In this document: in pieces, positions 3,594 to 60,804 of the stretch | Layout: every line of letters starts with the position of its first letter | Position numbering within the stretch: position 1 is the stretch's first letter | IMG/VR virus record: IMGVR_UViG_3300050120_000152 | Coordinates: 124,001-188,000 of that record | Length of the DNA stretch: 64,000 bases | Reading direction: 5' to 3' (one strand) | Notes under the pieces: model-generated | Databases searched by the model: none | What the model was told of the DNA's origin: nothing | Seen by the model: the letters and a program-made list of their open reading frames with translations, nothing else | Position numbers and translations under genes: made by a program

Positions 3594-3688
3594 GGAAGAA
3601 TAAGCCGAGTCGGTCTAGCGGTGGCTCATTCGAAATGAGAAGGCCCATGAAAATGGGTGTGAGAGTTCAAGTCTCTCTTCTTCCGCCA
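3594..3688 (+). tRNA. trnS: tRNA-Ser(CGA)
   Basis: GGAAGAA/TTCTTCC, G73, CCA, loop TTCGAAA, long variable arm. Confidence 0.92.
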
Positions 3689-3716
3689 GTTTTACAATTT
3701 GTATAAATAGATTTAC

Positions 3717-4925: not shown

Positions 4926-4966
4926 CAAATAACATTAATGTGATATAATGTATATGTAATGGCGGT

Positions 4967-5095
4967 ACACGGCGGTATGAAGAATTTGGGAATGGGCGTG
5001 GAACATCATCGGCAAATGTGTTTCTTTGGGATGCCATATCACCGCGCCTACCGTGCGGAGTCCTCTGGACATAGGCCAACTCACCGATGCCCATT
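4967..5095 (+). ncRNA. candidate pseudoknotted RNA
   Basis: GC-rich island; CACGG/CCGTG, GCGGT/ACCGC and crossing AATGGGC/GCCCATT. Confidence 0.4.
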
Positions 5096-7355: not shown

Positions 7356-7498
7356 GCAGTAATGACGGAATTGGTAGACGTGGCGGACTAAACCGACCTC
7401 TGAAAAGTAGAGAGGATAATCGTTAGATAATGGTGTAAATCGGCTGTCCTAGTTACTAACGTATCGAAGACGTGTAGGTTCAAATCCTACTTATTGCG
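7356..7498 (+). ncRNA. tRNA-Leu-like scaffold with about 58 extra nt replacing the anticodon arm
   Basis: GCAGTAA/TTATTGC, Leu-type D arm GACGGAATTGGTAGACGT, T arm GTAGG-TTCAAAT-CCTAC. Confidence 0.7.
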
Positions 7499-7507
7499 AT
7501 GTTTTAT

Positions 7508-7624
7508 ACGTACATAGCTCAGTCTGGGAGAGCAGCCCCGTAGGAGGGGTAAGTTAAATCAATTTGACGTTTAGGCGTTGCAATGCGATACTGGTCGGTG
7601 GTTCGAATCCATCTGTGCGTACCA
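7508..7624 (+). ncRNA. expanded tRNA-like RNA (Pro-like D arm)
   Basis: ACGTACA/TGTGCGT-A-CCA; GCCCC-GTAGGA-GGGGT; 46-nt two-hairpin variable region; canonical T arm. Confidence 0.7.
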
Positions 7625-12845: not shown

Positions 12846-13572
12846 AATATATTGACACCATGCTATAACATGTTATACTTCTCTACGGTTGATGGCAGTC
12901 TGATGAAAGCAGGAATCGAATGAATTTGGATAGATTCCGGTGTTGAATGACTATAGGGTAGTCCAAGACCTTGTATAGCCAGAATCCCCCTGTTGGGGTA
13001 CACAAATTGGTAATGAAAGGTTAGCGCCAGACAAAATCCAATTCATCAAACCTTACTAATTTAGGATTTATTATGAATGATAATTTGAATGATAGGGTAA
13101 GAACCATTCTTATCGAAGAATATAATATTGAAATTGGAGCCTTGGATATCTTTCCCGGCACCAACCCTGACGCAACTCCCGAAGATGTTGCGAAGGAAAT
13201 TATAAAAGCAATGGAAAGCATTGCAGCAGGCGACTGTGAAGAGTTTGACTTCAGTGATGAAGATAAAGCAGAATATAAATCATTTTTCTTGCATGGTGAT
13301 ATGTTACCATTGCAAACTGAAATTGGAACGGTATAGCACTCATAGTAAAGAGTAGCGCAGGATTCAGCGTAATAAATCGGGATTGCCATGTTATGGTGGA
13401 CGAAAGTAAACCAACCCTTTGAATTTTCCAACTATTTTTAATGGATAGTAGCAATGAAATTATTTGAAATTCTACTTTTAATTGGTATCATAGTTGTCAT
13501 TGTACGTATTTGTGTGTTAAAATACCGTAAGTACCTCAATAGTAATAACGATGATATCAAATAGGATTAATC

Positions 13573-13950
13573 ATGACACAATATATTCTTAAAACATTAG
13601 ATGAGGATTACTATTCATCTTGGACTTACCAAGGATTTGTAAGTCATTTAACCCCTGAAACTATTGTGAAAATGATTAAAGAACGTATTGTCAATCTTAA
13701 AGATATAGATACCAAGATCACTGAAGTATCGAATGATAATTATAATAACTTTCCTGATGCCATTTATGATAATGATTTGCCTGACGGCACATTAAATGAA
13801 GTTAATCAGTTATGCGAGACACGCACCGTAATGAGTTGGATGGAATTTGGATCAAAAACATATATTCGGGTTGATACGGGAATAATGGATCATACTATTG
13901 AAATATTGGCTCTTTCTGATTATTTTGCTTCTATTTGCAAGGTACCATAA
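13573..13950 (+). CDS. hypothetical protein
   Basis: ORF with AGGA RBS; distantly similar to 13935-14348. Confidence 0.6.
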   Translation: MTQYILKTLDEDYYSSWTYQGFVSHLTPETIVKMIKERIVNLKDIDTKITEVSNDNYNNFPDAIYDNDLPDGTLNEVNQLCETRTVMSWMEFGSKTYIRVDTGIMDHTIEILALSDYFASICKVP

Positions 13951-24957: not shown

Positions 24958-26109
24958 TCAGTCCGTTGAAGCACATTCGTCTGAAATGTTAAAATCTTTA
25001 TAATGCTTAATAAGCCAAGCTTTGTCATCAAATGGTTTACCAGTATAGTAACTCATAGCTACATTGAACATCATAGGTTCTAGTTCATCTTTAGCCTTCA
25101 AAGCAAATTCTTTGCGCGATAATAAGGAATTATCATGAAAAAATTTAATAGGTGCGTCAAGCTTTTTATATAATTTTCTAACAATTAATTCCATTTCATC
25201 AATACGATTAAGTAAATATATATCATGACTAAAATGAGCCCTTACATCATCACTTAATTCATTAACCACGCACTCAAATAAGTTACGTGGATGAGTTACA
25301 TTGTCTTTCAGTGAATGTAGATTTTTGTACCAGTCACATTTTACTTTAATGTTCATACCATCAACATTGATAACATATCCTTCAATATCTTTCATATTTG
25401 GAATATTGTCTACGAATTCGATCAATTTAACTGGATCAATATCATAAAAATGGTCTTTCACCAAATGCTGAACACAACCAAATTCCTCCATGTCAGATTG
25501 TAACATACTATATGGATAATCCATACCATTCGTCAAATCTCGTGCCGAAAAAATGGTTAAATTGGTTTTTTGATACGGTAAAACAATTCTAAATTTTGCA
25601 TCAGTAAATTCCATACTTACAGAATATCCCTTATGCATCATGTACATGAGGAAATTATGCAACGTTGAGTTTTCTTCCAGCTGAAGAAATTCATTTGCAG
25701 CAATAGCTTGGTCGGATTGTAATGCAGTCTTAGACTTCAAATAAACCATGTCAGCAATAGGAAGTTTATAAGTAGTCATAATACTACCATCCATCTTGTC
25801 CATGATAGATCGAGTCTTGCTGAAATCCAAATTCATTGCCATTTGATTTTCGTTCAAATTAAAAAATTTGCGAGGGGTAAGTGCTGCCAACGATTCATAC
25901 TTATCATCTTTAGTAATGAAAGTAATTCCACGGCATTCCAAAGCCGATGGCTTCAAAAAATCAGTATAGGATGCAAGACGATAAGTGAACACACGGAATT
26001 GAGTACCGTTGAACAGATGGTCAACATAATAAAATGGGCTTTCGTCAGATTCGCATAATGCCATCAAATCTTGATAAAGATCACGGCCATATTGAGTTTG
26101 AACAGTCAT
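24958..26109 (-). CDS. rnlA: T4 Rnl1-like RNA ligase
   Basis: ECRG, KFFNLNE, motif I KMDGS, EGYV, KVKCDWY. Confidence 0.92.
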   Translation of the reverse strand: MTVQTQYGRDLYQDLMALCESDESPFYYVDHLFNGTQFRVFTYRLASYTDFLKPSALECRGITFITKDDKYESLAALTPRKFFNLNENQMAMNLDFSKTRSIMDKMDGSIMTTYKLPIADMVYLKSKTALQSDQAIAANEFLQLEENSTLHNFLMYMMHKGYSVSMEFTDAKFRIVLPYQKTNLTIFSARDLTNGMDYPYSMLQSDMEEFGCVQHLVKDHFYDIDPVKLIEFVDNIPNMKDIEGYVINVDGMNIKVKCDWYKNLHSLKDNVTHPRNLFECVVNELSDDVRAHFSHDIYLLNRIDEMELIVRKLYKKLDAPIKFFHDNSLLSRKEFALKAKDELEPMMFNVAMSYYTGKPFDDKAWLIKHYKDFNISDECASTD

Positions 26110-26650
26110 TGCAATTTCCGATTGTATTAGGGTAAATGAGTTTTTCGTTTTCTATTATAGCATGCTCATGTAACTTATTGTCAAGTGTCTTGGTAGGACT
26201 GATGATATGGGTTACTTTCCATTTATGAATAGCTTCCATATAATCTGATACAATACCACGATGGCATGACCATGGCACGGCTTCGCTACACATATAGGCT
26301 ACTTTATTATCAGTAGCATAACTTTTTAATAATTCGATAGCATGTGCGAATGCTGGATCGTGATAGGCATAATCGGCATAATTACGGAATGCCGGTAATC
26401 GCCATGCTGCATTGTTTCCTGTAGACTTGGGATGTTTCTTACGAAATCCACCAAGTTCTGGCATATGAATGTAGTCAATACCCATCAAAGGTAAAGTATA
26501 TTCAAAATAATCTTTATTAAAATGTGGGAATTTTTTGGAACTTGGAAATGTACGCACGTCAACTAGCATATCAATACGATATGCACTCAACATCTTAACA
26601 AAGGTTCTAAAATCTTTATCAGAGTGGCCTATGGAAAAAATTTCTGGCAT
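26081..26650 (-). CDS. DUF488 family protein
   Basis: IFSIGHS, LVDVRTFPSSK.FPHFN, LGG.R, MCSE..W.CHR. Confidence 0.88.
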   Translation of the reverse strand: MPEIFSIGHSDKDFRTFVKMLSAYRIDMLVDVRTFPSSKKFPHFNKDYFEYTLPLMGIDYIHMPELGGFRKKHPKSTGNNAAWRLPAFRNYADYAYHDPAFAHAIELLKSYATDNKVAYMCSEAVPWSCHRGIVSDYMEAIHKWKVTHIISPTKTLDNKLHEHAIIENEKLIYPNTIGNCNDCSNSIWP

Positions 26651-28450: not shown

Positions 28451-28540
28451 TGGCGGGAGTAGTGGGAGTCGAACCCACGACGTTTAACATTAAATGCATG
28501 GATTTAGAATCCACCGCTCTGACCACTGAGCTATACTCCC
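28451..28540 (-). tRNA. amber suppressor tRNA (anticodon CTA)
   Basis: GGGAGTA/TACTCCC-G-CCA; GTGGA-TTCTAAA-TCCAT; 19-nt variable region; canonical D and T arms. Confidence 0.88.
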
Positions 28541-41080: not shown

Positions 41081-41179
41081 AGTAACACTCTCTGTAATAT
41101 ACCTATTTATATGTATTACAAAGTTATGAATAAAAAGATTGACAAGTGATATAAATAACAAATATAATTACTACCTTGT

Positions 41180-41321
41180 GGGCGTATGGGGGAATTGGTA
41201 GACCCGGCAGACTCATTGAAGTCTTCTAGAAATAGAAGATTTTGTAAAATAAATTTAATAGTTTATTTTACAAAATCTGCTTCCGAAAGGAGTCCCGGTT
41301 CAAGTCCGGGTATGCCTACCA
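41180..41321 (+). tRNA. trnL: tRNA-Leu(CAA) split by a 57-nt insert (41215-41271)
   Basis: Removing the insert gives an 85-nt Leu cloverleaf with GCAGA-CTCAAAA-TCTGC. Confidence 0.85.
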
Positions 41322-41371
41322 AACAAATTCATGGTCTTCCCAAACCATGTCTTATGATGTAAGATATACAT

Positions 41372-41449
41372 CGGAGTGTAGCTCAGTCTGGCTAGAGCAT
41401 CGCGTTTGGGACGCGAGGGTCGCAGGTTCGAATCCTGTCTCTCCGACCA
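41372..41449 (+). tRNA. trnP: tRNA-Pro(TGG)
   Basis: TCGCG-TTTGGGA-CGCGA, CCA. Confidence 0.93.
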
Positions 41450-41788
41450 ATTCAAATTAAATGTTGACAATGACGTTTAATAATGTATAATTAGCTACAT
41501 GTAGTGGAACTCGTGACTCTGGTCACGTAAAGGATTGAAGCGAGAGCTTCTAAGGACTTGGAAATAGGGTATCGAATCCCTGCACCCCATGAGGGGGTGT
41601 TCGTCTAAGATAGGACACCAAGATTGCATTAGAAGGTAGCCATTCTGGATGAATGGAGAAAATAACACGAGGCGTCAACTGTACACGCCTACTCGCAAAG
41701 CTAGACATTAGTAAAAATGCACTCGCAAAGTTTTAAAAGTGTTGACAAAGAATAGAAACATGGTATTCTAGTTAACTCAGCAAGACAC

Positions 41789-41863
41789 GGGGAAGTACCT
41801 CAGAGACTAGAGGACTGGCATATGAGCCAGAAGTCGTAGGTTCAATCCCTACCTTCCCCACCA
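41789..41863 (+). ncRNA. tRNA with a 6-nt anticodon loop (AUAUGA)
   Basis: Perfect cloverleaf GGGGAAG/CTTCCCC-A-CCA, but CTGGC-ATATGA-GCCAG. Confidence 0.75.
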
Positions 41864-41866
41864 AAT

Positions 41867-43690
41867 TAAGATGGTGTAAAATCAGCGCAGAGTTGATCAC
41901 CTAGATGATAAGGGCTTACAGAACTGTTATAGGTTCTACACATATCATCCATCTTATAATAAAGCATGTGGATGAGTTTCCCGAAAGGGTTGTGAGTCGC
42001 CAGTCCAGAATTACGAATGGGCCGTTATACTAGACTAACGGAATTACCACTGACGATAATCGTTTGCTACGATTTGAAACATTCTTAGGAATGTATGGTA
42101 TAGCACCTTGAAGGCGAAAGTTTTCATGGTCAGGATAAGGTATCGCAAGATGCTAAAAGGGTTTGCGCCCACAAGCGCCCCACCATAGTAATATGGCCCA
42201 ACTATACAAGCTGGTAGGACACTAAGCGGAATGCTTAGGATTCATCATATGGTGGATATAGATCAGCACTCAATGGTAACGAAAACCACATTAGAGCCAA
42301 TCGGTGAAATGTGAGAGGTTTAGCAGCCTCTAGTTACATGCAACATTGGCCTGAAGTATGTTAAACCGGTAGTGGTTCCAGTATGAGGGTTTGCGCCTAA
42401 ATGCGAAGCTGCAATGTTAATGGGTGCGAACGCTCATGAAACATACTGTGAATGTATCCTTAGCGGGAGAAAAGCAGAGAAGGTCGGGTTTGAAGCTGTC
42501 GGGATGGAGAAAGTTTCATTAATAGCATTTCGCTACACATCCTTTTAGATAAATACATATATCTAGGAGATTGTGAATGAATTTTTGTCATTACGGTTGT
42601 GGAAAAGAAGGTCTGTTCTATTCTGAATCATCAAAGCGTTGGAGATGTTGCAAAAATCCAGCATTATGTGATGGTAGGAAACGTGAAGTCAGTACAATGA
42701 ATATAAATGGAGAGTCCCATAAAAGACTCAAAATGAAGTATAAAAATTGTCCTGAATGTGGGTTGAAGGTATCTGCACCAACATTAGCAGCACATGTACG
42801 TAAATGTACACGAAAACTTACTTGCATAGTATGTGGCAGTGAACATAAGCGTGATCAGGCAATAACATGTTCTGATAAATGTCGTAGTATATTAACTTCT
42901 GAAACAATAAGAGGACAATATGCTGATGGTAGTAGATCACCTAGAAAAGCCAAGAAAACGTCTGTAATATATGACGAACACGTTTTTGATAATGATGTAG
43001 AAGTTCTAGCATACAAATTGTTAGTTTCAATGAAAGTTGACAACTTGCAGCATGAAAGTGTTAGAATTCCATATGTCTATGAAGGATTAGACCATACATA
43101 TTTTCCTGATTTTACTTACGATGATGGTAACCAAAAATGTTTGGTTGAAATCAAAGCTGGTGGTAGAATGAACATGAGCAATTATGCTAAACTGCGCGCC
43201 GCTGAATCGTTAGGATATAAAATCATACTGTGGGATAGAAATGTTATTAAGAAGCTTTCTTCTAATAAAGACTGATGGACAAACGAACCTGCTCGACCTT
43301 AGTGGGTAAACTAGCCTTGATTGGCACTTTGAATATTATCAAAATAACGAAAAATGCAAAGTCAGGTTCGGTTACAGTTGAAAATAGCATAATGCTCCAC
43401 CGAAAGGAATGGAGTCATGCAAAAGCTCGCAAGGCTAATGTATGTTGGTAAAGAACTGCAAGTATGGGTGTAGCCACCCTTAGCTGCTCGCAAGGCAGGC
43501 TGAATGGGAAATGCCGAATAGACTGTAGCGACAATGGAAACGCCACCATTTAAAATAAGGCTGCTATGATGATGTACATATTTGTGGTCGAAAGACTAGA
43601 GTATGTGGACAAGTCGGGAAAAGGCTCGCAAAGCCCTATAATCCGCACGAAAGCATTATCACGAAGAGTGTAATCTCAACTCGACATATT
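41867..43690 (+). ncRNA. giant ornate ncRNA (GOLLD-like), about 1.1 kb, interrupted by an ORF
   Basis: About 680 nt + 410 nt ORF-free, more than 20 hairpins, many with GAAA/GCAA loops; starts directly after a tRNA; ends GAGT-GTAATCTCA-ACTC. Confidence 0.6.
42577..43275 (+). CDS. zinc-finger plus PD-(D/E)xK endonuclease (TnsA-N-like), putative homing endonuclease
   Basis: CxxC motifs; YFPDF..LVEIKAG; ATAAATA and AGGAG upstream. Confidence 0.75.
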   Translation: MNFCHYGCGKEGLFYSESSKRWRCCKNPALCDGRKREVSTMNINGESHKRLKMKYKNCPECGLKVSAPTLAAHVRKCTRKLTCIVCGSEHKRDQAITCSDKCRSILTSETIRGQYADGSRSPRKAKKTSVIYDEHVFDNDVEVLAYKLLVSMKVDNLQHESVRIPYVYEGLDHTYFPDFTYDDGNQKCLVEIKAGGRMNMSNYAKLRAAESLGYKIILWDRNVIKKLSSNKD

Positions 43691-53484: not shown

Positions 53485-56400
53485 TGATTCATAATTCCCG
53501 CAAGTTGCTCAAGAATGAATTACTGAAAAACTATATCAGCATGGTTTCCTATGATCGCGGCCATAGTGCTGGTGAACAGGAAGTAGAAAGTATTGCTAAT
53601 GAAATGGCATATGATCTGCAAAAGGTCGATGATTATATCACAGGTCTGGAACAGCAGTGCTTTCGGTTTCATTGTGCTGGCTGATAATACGGTGAAGAAA
53701 GCTCGAATTTAGCCTTGACAGCTATGGTTTCAAAGAGTAATCTGTAATCTGTTTCGTGAAGTATGATTGTTAAGGATTGGATTAAAAGAGCTACAGAACA
53801 GCCTGCGGGTGTAGCCAACCAATTATGGGCATGAATAGGAATACGGCTATGTAACACTGTCACCCTTGCTATGGGAAGCATTTACTTATAGACTGATAAA
53901 ATTAGAATGCGGTACGTCTGGGCTGTAATCAGACGAAAATCCTCCCGCCAGCTAGGATAAGCCCTTAGCTGGCTCAATTTCAGGAACGCCATCATGATCA
54001 ATCGTCACGAGCAGCAAGGTTATACCATTCTGGAACTGGGCTGGCTGCTTTATGCGGCTTGCTGGATCGTCGGCATCATCGGATGGATTGCCAACATCGT
54101 GGCTTTGTGCCATATGACAATGCCTGTTGACCTCGGTCATGCCAGCATTCTGTTCATTTTGCGCATCATCGGCATTCCAGTCGCACCATTGGGTGCAGTG
54201 TTGGGATTGTTTTTCTAAAAATCCCTTGCAATATGATGCCATTCTGATATAATACCCTTATCAACCACGATAGGGGATTATCATGCGCTACACTCTTCAC
54301 GATGCAAACGGTAACAAGCTGGGTGAATCTGAGACTGCGCAAGGCATCGGCAATATTGCCACACATGGCACGTTTTCATTTGATTCAAATCCGAACCGTT
54401 TTTATCCGTTCACAGTCTATGAACAGGAAAATGGTCATATTGTTGGTCACAATTATGAGTGTGAAACTCATATGACAGAAGCATTGCGTAAGCTAAAATA
54501 AAGCTTGCACTACCAGACAATTCTGTTATAATACTCTCACACCAAATGAAACGGAGTAAAATCATGGCAACTGCAACTCCCACTCCCACCACTGTCCGTC
54601 CACTGTTCACCATCGCTGCGGAGATTCGCAAGGATTGGGGCGCAAAGGTCAGTCCACATGCAAAGCCTTATTTGGATGCTATGGATTCTCTGAACAGAAT
54701 CGGAGACAACTATTATTGTGATACTGGTGTAAGTGTTGTCCTATATTTTCTCGGCAATGCGCAAGGTTGGAGGGGAGAATCTGCCAAGCGTATCAAGGCC
54801 GAACTCAGGGCAATGGCTGACATCAAGTAACAATTTCAGAAAGGTTGTCTCTTGGAACAGGCGTAAAAGCCAGCCGACAAGGTGGCTTTTCCTTTTTGGA
54901 TATTACTGTGCTTCCCATCCACAACCCTATTTTACATTACATATAATGGATTGTCAATAGATATTTTATAAAATAATTGGTGTAATTTACTAAAATATGG
55001 TACTTTGCTATTGCAAAGATGGGCTAAAGCTATTATAATACTTTCATCCCATCGGAGATAGTCATGGCTAAGCGTGTCGATTCCGTTACGATCAATGGCA
55101 AGGTTCATACCAAGGCCAGCATTCGTGCCATGCTTGAGTGCAACGATCAGTGGCTATATCGTGCCATTGTGGCTATCAATGCTTCACAGACTGCCAATGA
55201 GCTTGCTCATGGTGGAACCATCGAAGATAATGGTATTGGCTTCAATGGGGCAGACGGATACATTCTTATGAGCTTTGCGGCACAGTTGAATCGTTGCGGC
55301 CATCTTTCACCAAAGCAGACTATCATTGCTAGAAAAAAGATGGTAAAGTATGCATCACAGTTACTTACCATTGCCCGCGAAAAGGAATCGAAAATCCAAT
55401 GAAACAGCTAGTACTAAATACAGATCAAGGTGTTTTTACTTTTCATACGCATAATAGTGGTGCTTGCACGTTGCATGTCTATCCTGCACTTCAAGCAGAT
55501 GGCGATGATAATGGATTCAGGGCAGCTATGGATGGCGTTGAAAGTTTGTTACTTGCCATGTATTCCGCTGGCATCAATCTGAATACGCCTGAAATAGCTG
55601 AAGCAATCGACACGGCAATTTCCGCCATCGAAAATAATTACTGAAATGGTTGACAGCGCAATTCTATTGCATTAGAATAATCATACAGCAATCAAACAGG
55701 ATTCATTGTGAATACTCTCCCGTCTCTGAAAGCTTTTCAACTTGCCATGATATTCAACCGTTTTGTTATTGACGGTGACACTTATCCGACTGATGCCGAG
55801 TATATCAATGACGAGGATGGTGAACGCATCGTGGTCAGCAATGATTCCGATGAACTGACCTTTATCAAGATCGTTTCCAAGGATGACAGCAATGTATTTG
55901 TGGTCAGCAATGGTTCCGATGACTATACCGTTCAGTTTTTGAGTAGTCAGGCAATCAATCCATTTTCGGAGTAAGTTATGCCATCGTCCAATGTTGCTAT
56001 TTTCATTCTGCTTTCCACCATCCTTTTCGGCGGTTTGTTCCTTGTATGGCAAAAAAGTGATTGGCTGAATTTCGTCATCAAGGCTGGACTTTTCGGCATG
56101 ATGGTGTATGGTATCGTCATTTTGATTACCAAGTAATATGAAACTGTTATTTTGTAATGTCTGTCACGATGTTGTCAAATTGACTTTTGATGGCAGATAT
56201 TGTGCATGTAAAAAATCATGGGGGAAATATCTCCCTGATGGATTATACGCTCAAATCAGTGGAGAAGCTATTCCCATAGGGTTTGCCAATAATACGTTAC
56301 TGGAAGCCTTGTGCAAGCGTCCACAAGCTGGTGATGGATCACGGTTCACGGCCTTTGTCATTCCTCATGTTTGCCCTACTATCGAAACGGTTGAACATAA

Positions 56401-56772
56401 AAACTAAAATAATAGTTGACACCCTGAAACATTCTGTTATAATTACCTCACACCAACCAACAAGGGCAACATCATGAGCAAGTTCGCAGCTTCCATCGTC
56501 AAGGGTACTGGTTTCGTGCTGAATCGTGATGAAGGTCAGCCGTTCTATACGATTTCCAAGACTGGCGCACTGGAAGGAAAGCAGTCGCCGAACATGGGTT
56601 TCGTGTACAAGAATGCCGAGACTGGCGAGTATTCCGTTCATCTGGGTCTGAAGCGTACCGTGGTCGCGGATTTCAACGCTGTCAAAGGTTTCGTCAAGGA
56701 ATCGCTGGCCGCGTAACGCTTGACAGCGTTGCGAGCATTGTATTAGAATGCTCGCAACAAAGAGTTTTGATT

Positions 56773-56890
56773 GGGTTTGTACGCAGATGGCATAGCGGCT
56801 GTACAGTAAGGCCAGTGTGGCAACATTGTTGCCGATTATTATCGAGTTGATCGGTTCTAATCTTCGTGGGTTCGAATCCCTCCCTGCCCA
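56773..56890 (+). ncRNA. expanded tRNA-like RNA (Tyr-like, loop CAGUAAG)
   Basis: D arm CGC/GCG, 50-nt variable region with hairpins, T arm GTGGG-TTCGAAT-CCCTC; weak acceptor stem. Confidence 0.55.
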
Positions 56891-57147
56891 TTCAAAATGC
56901 TTGACATGCACCATTCAAGTTGTATAATAATCACATGGAAAACGAAACCAAACTTGTGATGTGCGATGTGGGCAGCTGCCGTAATGAGTTGCCAATCGAA
57001 CAGATGAACAGTGAATCCAGCAATGGTGAAACATGGTATGCTTGCCCTGATTGTGTGGACAAGGTTCAGAACAGGTCTGGTTATTGTTCGCTCCAATGTC
57101 AATACACGGGATTCTGTGACGATAGTTGCTGAAGTAATGAGTTAATA

Positions 57148-57345
57148 ATGGCGAGTTCTCTGGTGCGAAACCTGTACCAACTAGCCTAGCTGTAGGGCCA
57201 TGCAGGGAATGACTGATCGGGTATGGTAACCCGAACATAGGATAAATGTTAAATAGAAACGGCAGAGTCTTGGGGATTCTGATACGCCTATTGAAGCATC
57301 CTTTAAAAGCATTGATCCCAACATACAGTCAGAGAATTCGACCAT
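57148..57345 (+). ncRNA. candidate structured RNA
   Basis: 11-bp closing stem CGAGTTCTCTG/CAGAGAATTCG; GACTG/CAGTC; TCGGGT/ACCCGA. Confidence 0.5.
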
Positions 57346-57510
57346 TATTAACTTGACAATACTGTTTCATGTTGTATAATGTATTACAACCCCAGAAACT
57401 TTCGGTGGATAATGGGGCAATAAACCGGGCTACTAAGCTGAGTGGTAATTGATAGATCAGGATAAACCTTGCCCTTTGGGCCTGACCGTTGGTTACGAAA
57501 CCGAATATTC

Positions 57511-57657
57511 ACATAGTGAAGCATTCTTAAACGATACTTACACCTATACAAAACAGAACTGTAGGCGACAAGGATAAGCGTTTCCTATCACACGTATGGG
57601 ATTAGAATGTTAGGATAGCGCCTAGCACGTTTGGTAAGCTAGAATGCTTCACTATGT
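57511..57657 (+). ncRNA. candidate RNA closed by a perfect 17-bp inverted repeat
   Basis: ACATAGTGAAGCATTCT / AGAATGCTTCACTATGT. Confidence 0.55.
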
Positions 57658-57703
57658 AAATAATGATTGACAGTACCGTTCCAAGCTGTATAATGTAATT
57701 CAT

Positions 57704-57809
57704 GGGTCGGTAGCTCAGTTGGTAGAGCAGGAGACTTATTCAAGTATCTTCAATGAGGATACTTCTATTAATCTCTTGGTCGCGGGTTCGAACCCCGCCC
57801 GACCCACCA
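57704..57809 (+). tRNA. trnK: tRNA-Lys(TTT) split by a 30-nt insert (57738-57767)
   Basis: Body resembles enterobacterial tRNA-Lys; removing the insert gives 76 nt with loop CTTTTAA. Confidence 0.88.
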
Positions 57810-57901
57810 TTTCAACCGGCTACAATGTACCTCTGCTGCAAGATACCTCTGCGTAAGCAAGTATGGCGCTTAATTTGCAAGTGTGGCGTGCTGGTCTCTA
57901 T

Positions 57902-58183
57902 TCCATCAACAATGAGGTTACCATGAAAAAGCTGCTGATCTTCACCATCGTCGCATTTGCTACACTGACCACGCTGGTAGGCTGTACCGATGCGGAAAAG
58001 GCATCGTGGGGTGCGCTGGGTGATGCTGGGCATATCGTCTGCTACTCTGGCGGCAAGGTGATTTATGAGGGTGATTCTACGGGCAAGATCGCCACGGTGG
58101 ATCATTCCGATGGCTGGGAGTTCAAGGATGCAAACTCGGGCAAGTTTGTCCGCGTATCCGGTCAATGTCTCATCACGAACTGA
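57902..58183 (+). CDS. lipoprotein
   Basis: MKKLLIF..TTLVGC lipobox; GAGG RBS. Confidence 0.75.
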   Translation, partial: SINNEVTMKKLLIFTIVAFATLTTLVGCTDAEKASWGALGDAGHIVCYSGGKVIYEGDSTGKIATVDHSDGWEFKDANSGKFVRVSGQCLITN

Positions 58184-58676
58184 CAAGGTTTCATCCCTGA
58201 TACAACAACCGGGAATGTAAGGATACTATAATTTTCGGAATATGTCAAGATGCTCATACCATCCGCTGACGTAAGTTATCAGGACTTTTTGTGATATACC
58301 CTTGTGAAGCCGTGGTGTACTGGTTTAGGGTATATTGCAAAAAGGTGTTGACAAGCTGCAATGGTGTTGTATAATACAATTACACAATCGAGAGCTTTAG
58401 CGGTAACAGAATCGACTGTGGGGATGTGCACGGAGCGGCAACGTGTTCACGTTGTGATGTGATAAGGATATAGGACAGTAGGATAACAGAATAAACCCTG
58501 ATTGATTCGCGAGTCAACATGAATAAACCTGTTAGAGTATTGTTACAATCTGAATCATATTGTGGGTTCGAATCCCACCATCCTCCTCGCTAAAGGTAGC
58601 CATTCTGATGAATGGAGAAAATAACACGAGGCACATATGCGCGCCTACTCGATTAACCATCATTTGGCAAAAAGAG

Positions 58677-58967
58677 TTGACAGCCTGCTGACGTTCCATT
58701 ATAATACTTGCATCAACCAAGAGAACGCCATTAATGTCTGATGAATCATTCCCCATTGGCACTCGCGTACAAACTGTTAAGTATGGTGCTGGAACTGTAG
58801 TTGACGAGGAAGTATGTCACGACATTTTTGGTGGTGTTCCTAGAGCAATTTCTACTGGTAGGCGTGGTGTTATGTTGGATAACCCTACCATATTGAGTCC
58901 TAGTCCAGCATATTTTTGGCAAAACGAGTTGACAGTCTGCTGACGTTCCATTATAATACTCCCATCA
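58677..58967 (+). promoter_or_regulatory. duplicated sigma70 early promoters flanking one gene (type example of many cassette promoters at 48-64 kb)
   Basis: TTGACAG(C/T)CTGCTGACGTTCCATTATAATACT at 58677 and 58929. Confidence 0.85.
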
Positions 58968-59967
58968 TCACAAAGGGATAAGATCATGGCTCGCATTTAT
59001 CATCCTGAAGTAGCTCGCGGTGGCAATAGCTATGCGCAAGTTGCGGCACCGAACGATGCTCGCTATATGGGTCTGTATCACTGGTGCGGATATTGGGCAC
59101 AGTGGGATAAGATCATCGGGGTGGATGGTATGTGGTGGATCGTGCAAGGTGTGGATGTAAATGGTGAGCCATTGGCTGGCTCAGATGGTCGAGTGCGCAA
59201 GCATTGCACCAGCATGGAAGCAAGCCATTTTGCTGATAAACCGTTTCAGGTTCGCAGTCGATATGGCAAGGATTCAATGCTTGACAGCTGATACAATTCT
59301 GTTATAATACTCCCATCATCAAGGGAAACGCCAATATGTCCGAACAGCAAGCCAATATCTGCACCGCCTTCAACATCATGGTACGGTATGCATTCCCTGA
59401 TTCTATGGTATATGCTCGCGTTGCCAACATTCTTGGCGAAACCATCGTCATCACATTCACTCAAAAAACCCAGTATTCAAACAACATCGCCGAAAATGAT
59501 CCCGCATTCATGAAGTTCCTTGTTCATGTTGGCAAAGATGGCTCCGCTGAAATTAACGCACCTGCCATGCATAGCAATGCTACCAAGGATGCAGGCGTAA
59601 AATTTCGCAAGATCAAAGCAGCCAGTGAAGGCGATGCTATGCAAAAGCTTGCACACTGGTTCATCAAAAACCATGATGGTATCATGGCCGCAAAGAATAA
59701 ATGGTAAAACGTCCATCGGGTGGAGTGAGTAGGTATTAACGGGTTATGCCGAATGTCGATCTTGCTTCACCTTTTTGTTGCGTAGGGTATTGTTCTCCAT
59801 CCGCCATACTATTTTACATTACATATAATACAATTGTCAACAAGTATTTCCGAAAAATGGTGAAATATATTGGTTGACGGCTAAGGTACAAAGGCGTAAT
59901 ATACACACATCGGCTAGGCAACCTAGCGATTAGAAAATCTTTCTTCCAAGCCAAAGAGGGTAATATC

Positions 59968-60804
59968 ATGAGTGGTCGTCTTGCAACCCGTATGCGCTCT
60001 TTTTCCACCATCCGCAGTAATGACAACAATCCACTGACCGTCGATCAGATGATGCGCGTAGCACCGTCTATTTTCGCAGTCGTGCCACATCATACGCGCA
60101 GCGAACGCTATGCCTATATTCCGACCAGTCAAGTACTGGCAGCATTGCAGCATGAAGGATTTCAGCCCTTCTCGGTTTCGCAGTCGCGTACCCGTATCGC
60201 AGATCGCCATGACTATACCCGTCATTTGATTCGTCTGCGTCATGTGAATGATATTTCCAATCCCGAAGCTGCGCACGAAATTGCAGTGTTGAATAGCCAT
60301 GATGGCACGTCATCCTATCAGATTCTTGGCGGCATGTTTCGCTATGTCTGCGCGAACGGTCTGGTCTGTGGAGACATTGAAAAGGATATTCGTATCCGTC
60401 ACAAAGGTAACATCATGGATGATGTTGTCGAGGGTGTTTACAGTGTTATGGAACGTCAAAAGGACGTGACTGCGCTTGTTGACAGCATGCGCAGCTTGAC
60501 ACTGGGTGTGGAGGAACGTATGATTCTGGCTGAAGGTGCGCTTGCCTTGCGGTTTGGTGAAGATGCCAGCCCGATCACTACGGCACAGGTATTGCAAGCT
60601 CGCCGCAATGAAGATGCTGGCAATAGCTTGTGGCAGGTGTTCAATCGGGTTCAGGAAAACGTGATTCAGGGTGGTATGGACGGTCGCGGCAAGACTGGCA
60701 AGATTCGTAAGGTTCGTGAAATCACGGGCATGGATCAGGATACGAAATTGAATCGCGCACTCTGGACGCTTACTGCAAAAATGGCTGAACTCAAGGCCGC
60801 ATGA
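59968..60804 (+). CDS. DUF932/DUF945 family phage/plasmid protein
   Basis: APSIFA..HTRSERYAYIPT..EGFQPF, NSHDGTSSYQ..RYVCANGL. Confidence 0.88.
   Translation: MSGRLATRMRSFSTIRSNDNNPLTVDQMMRVAPSIFAVVPHHTRSERYAYIPTSQVLAALQHEGFQPFSVSQSRTRIADRHDYTRHLIRLRHVNDISNPEAAHEIAVLNSHDGTSSYQILGGMFRYVCANGLVCGDIEKDIRIRHKGNIMDDVVEGVYSVMERQKDVTALVDSMRSLTLGVEERMILAEGALALRFGEDASPITTAQVLQARRNEDAGNSLWQVFNRVQENVIQGGMDGRGKTGKIRKVREITGMDQDTKLNRALWTLTAKMAELKAA

Follow-up and report, generated by a model that had tools for sequence, protein, structure and literature searches.

A putative 30-base hairpin intron in the anticodon of a lysine tRNA gene from a giant peat phage

A giant phage from peat carries a tRNA-Lys(UUU) gene that is split in the middle of its anticodon by a 30-base hairpin, which we read as a probable but unproven intron. 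Hairpins of a similar kind recur in other large phages and fit no known splicing signal. They point to an undescribed way of splicing tRNA in bacterial viruses, with a 2-bp helix across the two junctions as the candidate recognition element and a T4 Rnl1-type ligase as the candidate sealing enzyme.

The interrupted tRNA-Lys gene and its boundaries

The DNA analysed, referred to as the window, is a 64,000-nucleotide stretch (bases 124001-188000) of a single 340,344-bp virus record with direct terminal repeats, an estimated completeness of 100% and a GC content of 34.7%, assembled from a peat metagenome. The record is a jumbo phage with about 40 tRNA genes, a permuted tmRNA and a GOLLD RNA. The GOLLD match (43267-43682, + strand) covers the full model at 149.7 bits, just under the gathering score of 150, with an E value of 7e-40, and lies about 1.4 kb downstream of a tRNA cluster (41180-41863). 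The standard genetic code fits best, and recoding of stop codons as the reason for the few long ORFs was not supported, although a 90-nt tRNA with the anticodon CUA (amber suppressor type) and a long variable arm is present at 28451-28540 (- strand). The lysine gene lies in a stretch of 42-46% GC (window 50-64 kb), as compared with 35% for the rest of the genome, which contains this bacterial-looking tRNA-Lys and a DUF932 gene (59968-60804) and is probably a horizontally acquired module. A search of viral and metagenome contigs for relatives of the flanking genes, an 85-aa lipoprotein and the DUF932 protein, found only 27-70% identical proteins in other contexts and no orthologous locus.

This GC-richer stretch is made of short cassettes, each behind a perfect TTGACA-N16-18-TATAAT promoter. 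The window holds 16 such sites between 4922 and 61425 (for example at 56416, 56901, 57353, 57667, 58348, 58677, 58929 and 59281) against 0.12 expected. Fifteen are on the + strand, and nine fall within 56.4-61.4 kb, each in front of a short ORF or a small RNA. The promoter of the lysine gene (57667-57694, + strand) matches the sigma-70 consensus at 12 of 12 positions with a 16-nt spacer, and its -10 hexamer ends 9 nt before the first base of the tRNA. Directly upstream, behind another perfect promoter, is a 280-nt stretch (57387-57666, + strand) with no + strand ORF of 50 aa or more. An 18-bp long-range stem (57510-57527 with 57641-57657) encloses about 110 nt of it (z = -2.4), and it is a possible unknown small RNA.

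The gene occupies 57704-57809 on the + strand, and the observation made in the first-pass annotation, a tRNA-Lys(UUU) with a 30-nt hairpin insert, is confirmed. The Rfam tRNA model (RF00005) matches 57704-57806 over its full length (1-71) at 62.2 bits against a cut-off of 29, with an E value of 4e-11, and places all the extra bases in the anticodon loop. ARAGORN in bacterial mode miscalls the gene as tRNA-Ile(aat) at 57716-57809, whereas in intron mode it gives tRNA-Lys(ttt) with a 30-nt intron between positions 34 and 35 and draws the cloverleaf. The acceptor stem is GGGTCGG/CCGACCC, followed by A73, and the D, anticodon and T stems are all intact. Exon 1 (57704-57737) comprises the acceptor 5' strand, the D arm, the 5' strand of the anticodon stem and the loop bases C32, U33 and U34. 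Exon 2 (57768-57809) comprises U35, U36, A37 and A38, the 3' strand of the anticodon stem, the variable loop, the T arm, the acceptor 3' strand, A73 and an encoded CCA (57807-57809).

The insert (57738-57767) reads ATTC-AAGTATCTTC-AAT-GAGGATACTT-CTA. It consists of a 4-nt lead, ATTC, a 10-bp hairpin with one G.U pair (arms 57742-57751 and 57755-57764, loop 57752-57754) and a 3-nt tail, CTA. This is the 9-bp stem of the first-pass annotation plus a closing C-G pair. Folded alone, the insert reaches -9.8 kcal/mol as compared with -2.5 +/- 1.6 for 200 shuffles (z = -4.5), none of which was as stable, and the whole precursor keeps the normal cloverleaf. The 3' arm of the hairpin (57756-57764, intron bases 19-27, AGGATACTT) repeats the end of exon 1 (57729-57737, AGGAGACTT) at 8 of 9 positions. 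The precursor could therefore refold into two tandem pseudo-anticodon hairpins, a similarity of unknown meaning.

An assembly artefact had been named in advance as one outcome that would overturn the observation. It was excluded, because the source run covers the locus in one contig at about 279x and a second peat sample holds 57586-57778 without a single difference. The register CTT|TTAA, as first proposed, is the only one that gives UUU; the neighbouring registers give AUU or UAU. Removal of 57738-57767 yields the 7-nt loop CUUUUAA, with U33, the anticodon UUU and a purine at 37, and eleven viral contigs carry uninterrupted tRNA-Lys genes with the identical joined anticodon arm GCAGGAGACTTTTAATCTCTTGG. 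When contigs of four runs were aligned to 56400-59400, ordinary tRNA-Lys sequences of other organisms stopped matching exactly at 57737 and resumed at 57768. In addition, a 167-nt contig from a saline-spring metatranscriptome matched 57712-57906 with seven substitutions (roughly 96% identity) and exactly the 30 bases at 57738-57767 missing. This contig continues 97 nt into the phage-specific 3' flank, so it comes from a relative of this locus and not from some other tRNA-Lys. It is also the only form in that run, and it fits an intron-less DNA allele at least as well as a spliced transcript. Either way, the 30 nt form a discrete unit that can be present or absent.

Related inserts and the pairing across the junctions

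The lysine gene is not the only interrupted tRNA gene in this genome. ARAGORN in intron mode and our own scan for T arms with matching acceptor strands revealed a tRNA-Leu(CAA) at window 41180-41321 (+ strand) with a 57-nt two-hairpin insert in the anticodon (41215-41271, or one base to the right) and its own perfect promoter at 41139-41168. The Leu insert starts ATTGAAGT, as compared with ATTCAAGT in the Lys insert. An Ile2/Met(CAU) gene at genome 119832-119981 has a 73-nt three-hairpin insert at the same place and is scored as a tRNA by Rfam at 54.7 bits. A tRNA-like gene at genome 319035-319160, best read as Asn(GUU), has a 51-nt insert that looks like a mini-tRNA. The Leu(CAA) gene and the Asn-type gene are the only candidates that ARAGORN or our scan found for those anticodons, whereas Lys(UUU) has a second, uninterrupted and very different copy at genome 318951-319028. 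None of the inserts has another copy in the genome. The standard bacterial-mode call missed the interrupted Leu(CAA), Ile2/Met(CAU) and Asn-type genes altogether.

The window also holds tRNA-like RNAs with long arms and no usable anticodon loop (7356-7497, 7508-7624 and 58420-58586). Of two adjacent genes on the + strand, the one at 7356-7497 has a Leu-like body, about 57 extra bases, a G.G mismatch in the anticodon stem and no CCA, and the one at 7508-7624 has a CCA, a 6-nt 'anticodon' loop and a 46-nt two-hairpin variable region. At 58382-58600 (+ strand), a tRNA-like RNA behind its own perfect promoter (58348-58375) has the acceptor stem GGGGAUG/CAUCCUC, a perfect T arm and no CCA. A roughly 50-bp imperfect hairpin replaces its anticodon arm, and its leader and trailer pair over 9 bp (GCUUUAGCG/CGCUAAAGG) and enclose the whole element (z = -2.9).

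To look for related inserts in other phages, we searched viral contigs with a pattern for Lys/Asn-type bodies with 21-51 extra bases in the loop; loci found in this way carry L numbers below. Independent large-phage contigs carry Lys and Asn tRNAs with 31-33-nt hairpin inserts at 34|35 (L045, L044, L036 and L231). L045 is Lys(UUU), CTT|ACATC-AAGTGCAG-AGAAATA-CTGCACTT-TAG|TTAA. L044 is Asn(GUU), CTG|ATGCAG-AAGTATCTTC-TAAAGA-GGGTATTT-CGA|TTAA. L036 and L231 are Asn with homologous inserts, and L047 and L048 are Lys-type with 21-nt inserts. L044 shares the 10-mer AAGTATCTTC with the present insert although it sits in a different tRNA with a different anticodon stem, which by our estimate has a probability of about 0.003 by chance among the inserts compared. 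Its two differences in the 3' arm (C to T and A to G) keep pairing only as G.U, which works on the sense-strand RNA and not on the other strand. This argues for homology, for movement between tRNA genes, and for selection on the RNA structure.

Other searches were less productive. A pattern for the same anticodon arm with a 20-45-nt gap gave only a chance hit in a coding region of the viral contigs. A scan for the 10-mer gave 22 hits, but all except L044 lie in protein-coding DNA, so the raw count means nothing. A pattern without the D arm gave more than 118 hits, nearly all of them normal tRNAs whose acceptor stem starts with GACT, and only L231 was new. The Lys/Asn pattern run over one genome for each of 185,579 prokaryotic species gave archaeal 37|38 introns in Asgard and DPANN archaea and duplication artefacts in bacteria, but no case of the phage hairpin type.

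Two further kinds of insert were observed. The first is 44-51 nt long with a closing stem plus a T-arm-like hairpin, in Asn-type tRNAs read CTGT|...|TAA, and occurs in L038-L040, L042 and L046 as well as at genome 319035-319160. For this mini-tRNA-like type, cuts by RNase P and RNase Z followed by Rnl1 sealing would be a natural mechanism. The second was seen in the 533-kb megaphage record of L047, where three tRNA-like genes (3609-3708, 4949-5074 and 13517-13642) carry the same roughly 45-nt element (AAUUUGUCCUNCGGGAAUG..UUGGGAUUACAU) in or near the anticodon arm.

We then folded each anticodon arm plus insert with the anticodon stem enforced. The present gene and L045, L044, L036 and L231 give the same picture, in which the anticodon stem is followed by bases 32-34 opposite 36-38, two base pairs, a small internal loop and the hairpin. 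Intron base 1 pairs with the first base of exon 2, and intron base 2 pairs with the last intron base. In the lysine gene, A and U at 57738-57739 pair with 57767-57768 (the last intron base A and U35), in both the RNAfold MFE and the centroid structure, and the 3' junction lies between 57767 and 57768. The Ile2/Met gene shows the two pairs as well (U-A35, C-G), as does Leu(CAA) in the 35|36 register, which is equally compatible with its anticodon. Over nine inserts the first pair forms in 7 and the second in 8, whereas five control registers form in 1-3. Both pairs form in 7 of 9, a count reached in 195 of 20000 label permutations; L047 and L048 do not show the junction helix. The pair types vary (A-U and U-A; U-A and C-G), and the homologous inserts L036 and L231 differ by a double U-A to C-G change. 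Consequently, the two junctions lie one base pair apart, each on the 5' side of one partner of the same pair, a two-fold symmetric arrangement with a 1-nt 5' stagger. This is not RNase III geometry, which leaves a 2-nt 3' overhang. An Ire1-like twin-loop model based on the alternative fold is less consistent than the junction helix, and an RNase P plus RNase Z model does not give the right 3' cut for this hairpin.

Candidate enzymes and possible modes of removal

The phage encodes a T4 Rnl1-family RNA ligase at window 24958-26109 (- strand; PF09511, 70 bits) with the T4_Rnl1_C domain (PF20819), which in T4 confers tRNA specificity. A DUF488 gene (26081-26650, - strand) overlaps the start of the ligase gene by 29 nt, so the two are probably co-translated, but DUF488 is not shared with the other intron-bearing phages and the literature gives no function for it. 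The phage also has an Rnl2-like ligase and a rich tRNA toolkit outside the window, with a Thg1-like 3'-5' polymerase (genome 205792-206514), a CCA-adding enzyme (77535-78722), a TilS-like PP-loop protein (109233-109853), which fits the CAU-anticodon Ile2 gene, the peptidyl-tRNA hydrolase PTH2 (315886-316383) and a stand-alone P-loop kinase of the AAA_33/KTI12 type (68794-69330) flanked by HNH homing endonucleases.

All 832 ORFs of this genome were compared with three otherwise unrelated records that hold interrupted tRNAs (G001, G002 and G005). Only 98 ORFs had any match and only two matched all three, Rnl1 and the Thg1-like protein. A fifth intron-bearing record, the 533-kb G003, has both genes as well, and all sufficiently complete records with such tRNAs encode both. 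Of the records chosen as controls because they carry an uninterrupted tRNA-Lys, G006 has both genes and, on inspection, also has interrupted tRNAs, for example Leu(UAA) with 71 nt after U34. All six records that have both genes have interrupted tRNAs. G007, G008 and G009 have neither gene and no short-interrupted tRNA, although G009 has 32 tRNAs. The records are few and partly ascertained, G007 and G008 are related to each other, genome size is a confounder, and Rnl1 is common in tRNA-rich phages anyway (2 of 5 controls). Still, the direction is consistent with sealing by Rnl1. No nuclease candidate emerged.

The interpretation offered by the first-pass annotation is partly supported. The gene structure, the register, the exact 30-nt boundaries and the absence of a canonical bulge-helix-bulge (BHB) hold, as does the claim that any recognition element would have to be new, to which we add the junction helix as what that element probably is. 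Archaeal EndA, which had been put forward as a test enzyme, is unlikely to work because the substrate lacks the BHB. It is not shown that the RNA is ever cut at the two junctions and its exons joined. No RNA data for this phage exist in the runs searched, which contain only 3-5% of the sampled words, and these are conserved tRNA parts. Short non-group-I introns in phage tRNAs are also not unprecedented (PMC6784885).

We favour, at a probability of about 0.55, a precursor tRNA-Lys(UUU) with a protein-spliced intron of a phage-specific kind, transcribed from its own strong promoter. In this view, the anticodon stem continues upward into a near-continuous helix made of a 3x3 internal loop (32-34 opposite 36-38), the 2-bp junction helix, a small internal loop and the 10-bp hairpin. 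An endonuclease of the host or the phage, not identified, would cut each strand on the 5' side of the two partners of the central pair, between U34 and intron base 1 and between the last intron base and U35. It would probably measure from the tRNA body and not from the hairpin tip, because inserts with one, two or three hairpins and of different length share the junction. The nicked loop would then be sealed between 34 and 35 by the Rnl1-type ligase, directly if the ends are 3'-OH/5'-P, or after end healing by the P-loop kinase. Our data establish the structure of the gene, its exact boundaries, the recurrence of such inserts in other phages, the junction helix and the presence of the ligase, whereas the occurrence of cleavage and ligation, the identity of the enzymes and the end chemistry are deduced. 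The second tRNA-Lys(UUU) means that this copy need not function.

A broader reading, which we regard as tentative, is that large phages possess their own tRNA splicing pathway. An endonuclease would recognise the 2-bp helix on top of the anticodon stem and cut both strands one base pair apart, Rnl1, until now known only as a repair enzyme, would be the splicing ligase, and the introns would be small mobile hairpins that move between tRNA genes of different identity (Lys and Asn) and between phages.

Two alternatives are unlikely, to a similar degree. In the first, a small palindromic element or a templated duplication landed in the anticodon of a horizontally acquired tRNA-Lys gene, which is now a transcribed pseudogene, while translation relies on the other tRNA-Lys. 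The intron-less form in a close relative, the spare Lys gene, the GC-rich island and the 8-of-9 repeat of the exon 1 end, which looks like a templated origin, are in favour of it. On the bottom strand the insert also lies 3' of TTAA without target duplication, as IS200/IS605-type elements do. However, the genome holds a single copy of the insert and no Y1 transposase (PF01797 is absent), and no decay is seen in the exons, the promoter or the CCA. Nor does this reading explain the junction helix with compensatory changes across different tRNAs and phages, the wobble-only changes in L044, which fit selection on the RNA strand, or the fact that Leu(CAA), and apparently Asn(GUU), exist in this genome only as interrupted genes. 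In the second, the long-armed RNA acts unspliced, for example as a decoy or inhibitor for host defence nucleases that target tRNA-Lys or for tRNA-binding enzymes. tRNA-Lys is a target in phage-host conflict, for example of PrrC and PARIS, and the neighbourhood holds other promoter-driven tRNA-like RNAs with long arms (58420-58586 and 7508-7624). Phage tRNAs that evade anticodon nucleases have been described (PMC10264068). Nevertheless, anticodon nucleases read the anticodon loop, which the insert destroys, both halves of a canonical 7-nt loop (CUU/UUAA) are kept precisely in every example, and the feature recurs in Asn, Leu and Ile2 tRNAs that are not known common targets. Removal by RNA catalysis, from a relic group I intron or by a trans-acting ribozyme such as the GOLLD RNA of unknown function that lies beside a tRNA cluster 14 kb upstream, is very unlikely, because 30 nt cannot hold a catalytic core, Rfam found no group I intron or RNase P RNA over genome 1-327300, the 5' junction has no U.G wobble, and P1-like pairing of the exon 1 end with intron bases 4-8, attractive at first, is at chance level (598 of 5000 shuffles reach the observed value).

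Relation to known tRNA introns and tRNA repair

Enzymatic tRNA splicing is textbook biology for archaea and eukaryotes, whereas the tRNA introns known in bacteria are self-splicing. The present locus gives the smallest and cleanest example so far of the short phage tRNA introns, with 30 nt, one hairpin, its own promoter and exact boundaries. Together with its relatives it supplies a concrete candidate recognition element and a candidate ligase, which turns an oddity into a bench-testable question. If the pathway is real, it gives Rnl1-type ligases, and perhaps Thg1-like enzymes, in phages a housekeeping role beside defence repair, and would add a third class of tRNA intron recognition. It also matters for annotation, because bacterial-mode tRNA finders mislabel or miss these genes.

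The closest known case is that of the tRNA introns of Lak megaphages, which were reported in 2019, called enigmatic, and noted for identical introns across cohorts (Devoto et al. 2019, PMC6784885). In the literature searched, we found no later paper that explains phage tRNA introns. Both the Lak introns and the present insert are short (tens to about 110 nt), lie in the anticodon loop of tRNA genes of very large phages, lack a group I core and an Rfam hit, differ in presence or absence between related genomes, and have no known mechanism. The Lak introns, however, are 79-114 nt and contain a T-arm-like hairpin inside a closing stem, so that they look like mini-tRNAs, an architecture seen here in the Asn-type gene and its counterparts. 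The Lys insert belongs to the same phenomenon but is a distinct and simpler structural type, a single plain hairpin of 30 nt at 34|35 with the 2-bp junction helix.

Archaeal and eukaryal tRNA introns are cut by EndA/TSEN at a BHB and sealed by RtcB or Trl1. A protein-dependent cut-and-seal logic is the most likely mode of action here too, the pairing of an intron base with an exon base next to the 3' site recalls the anticodon-intron pair, and measuring from the tRNA body is likely. The BHB has two 3-nt bulges on opposite strands separated by a 4-bp helix, whereas our folds show a 3x3 internal loop, a 2-bp helix and a 2x2 loop, and a manual test of both BHB orientations around 34|35 finds no 4-bp central helix. 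The position is 34|35 rather than 37|38, and the cuts would be 1 bp apart. The phage has no RtcB and no EndA (PF01974 is absent from the complete genome, while control genomes give matches), and bacterial hosts lack EndA. In the scan of prokaryotic genomes the archaeal type was found only in archaea.

Group I introns occupy the same class of gene and the same insertion point, after base 34, as in the classical cyanobacterial tRNA-Leu(UAA), and both are mobile or sporadic in distribution. They are self-splicing ribozymes of 200-300 nt with a conserved core (P3-P9) and a U.G pair at the 5' splice site in P1. The present insert has no core, no match to Intron_gpI (RF00028) was found in the scanned genome, and U34 would pair with A, not G.

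The repair of tRNA-Lys in T4, in which the break made by the PrrC anticodon nuclease is mended by Pnkp and Rnl1, concerns the same tRNA species, a break in the anticodon loop beside the wobble base, and the same ligase family, including the tRNA-specific C-terminal domain. In T4 the break is damage inflicted by a host defence at 33|34 and nothing is removed, whereas here two cuts would excise a genetically encoded 30-nt segment.
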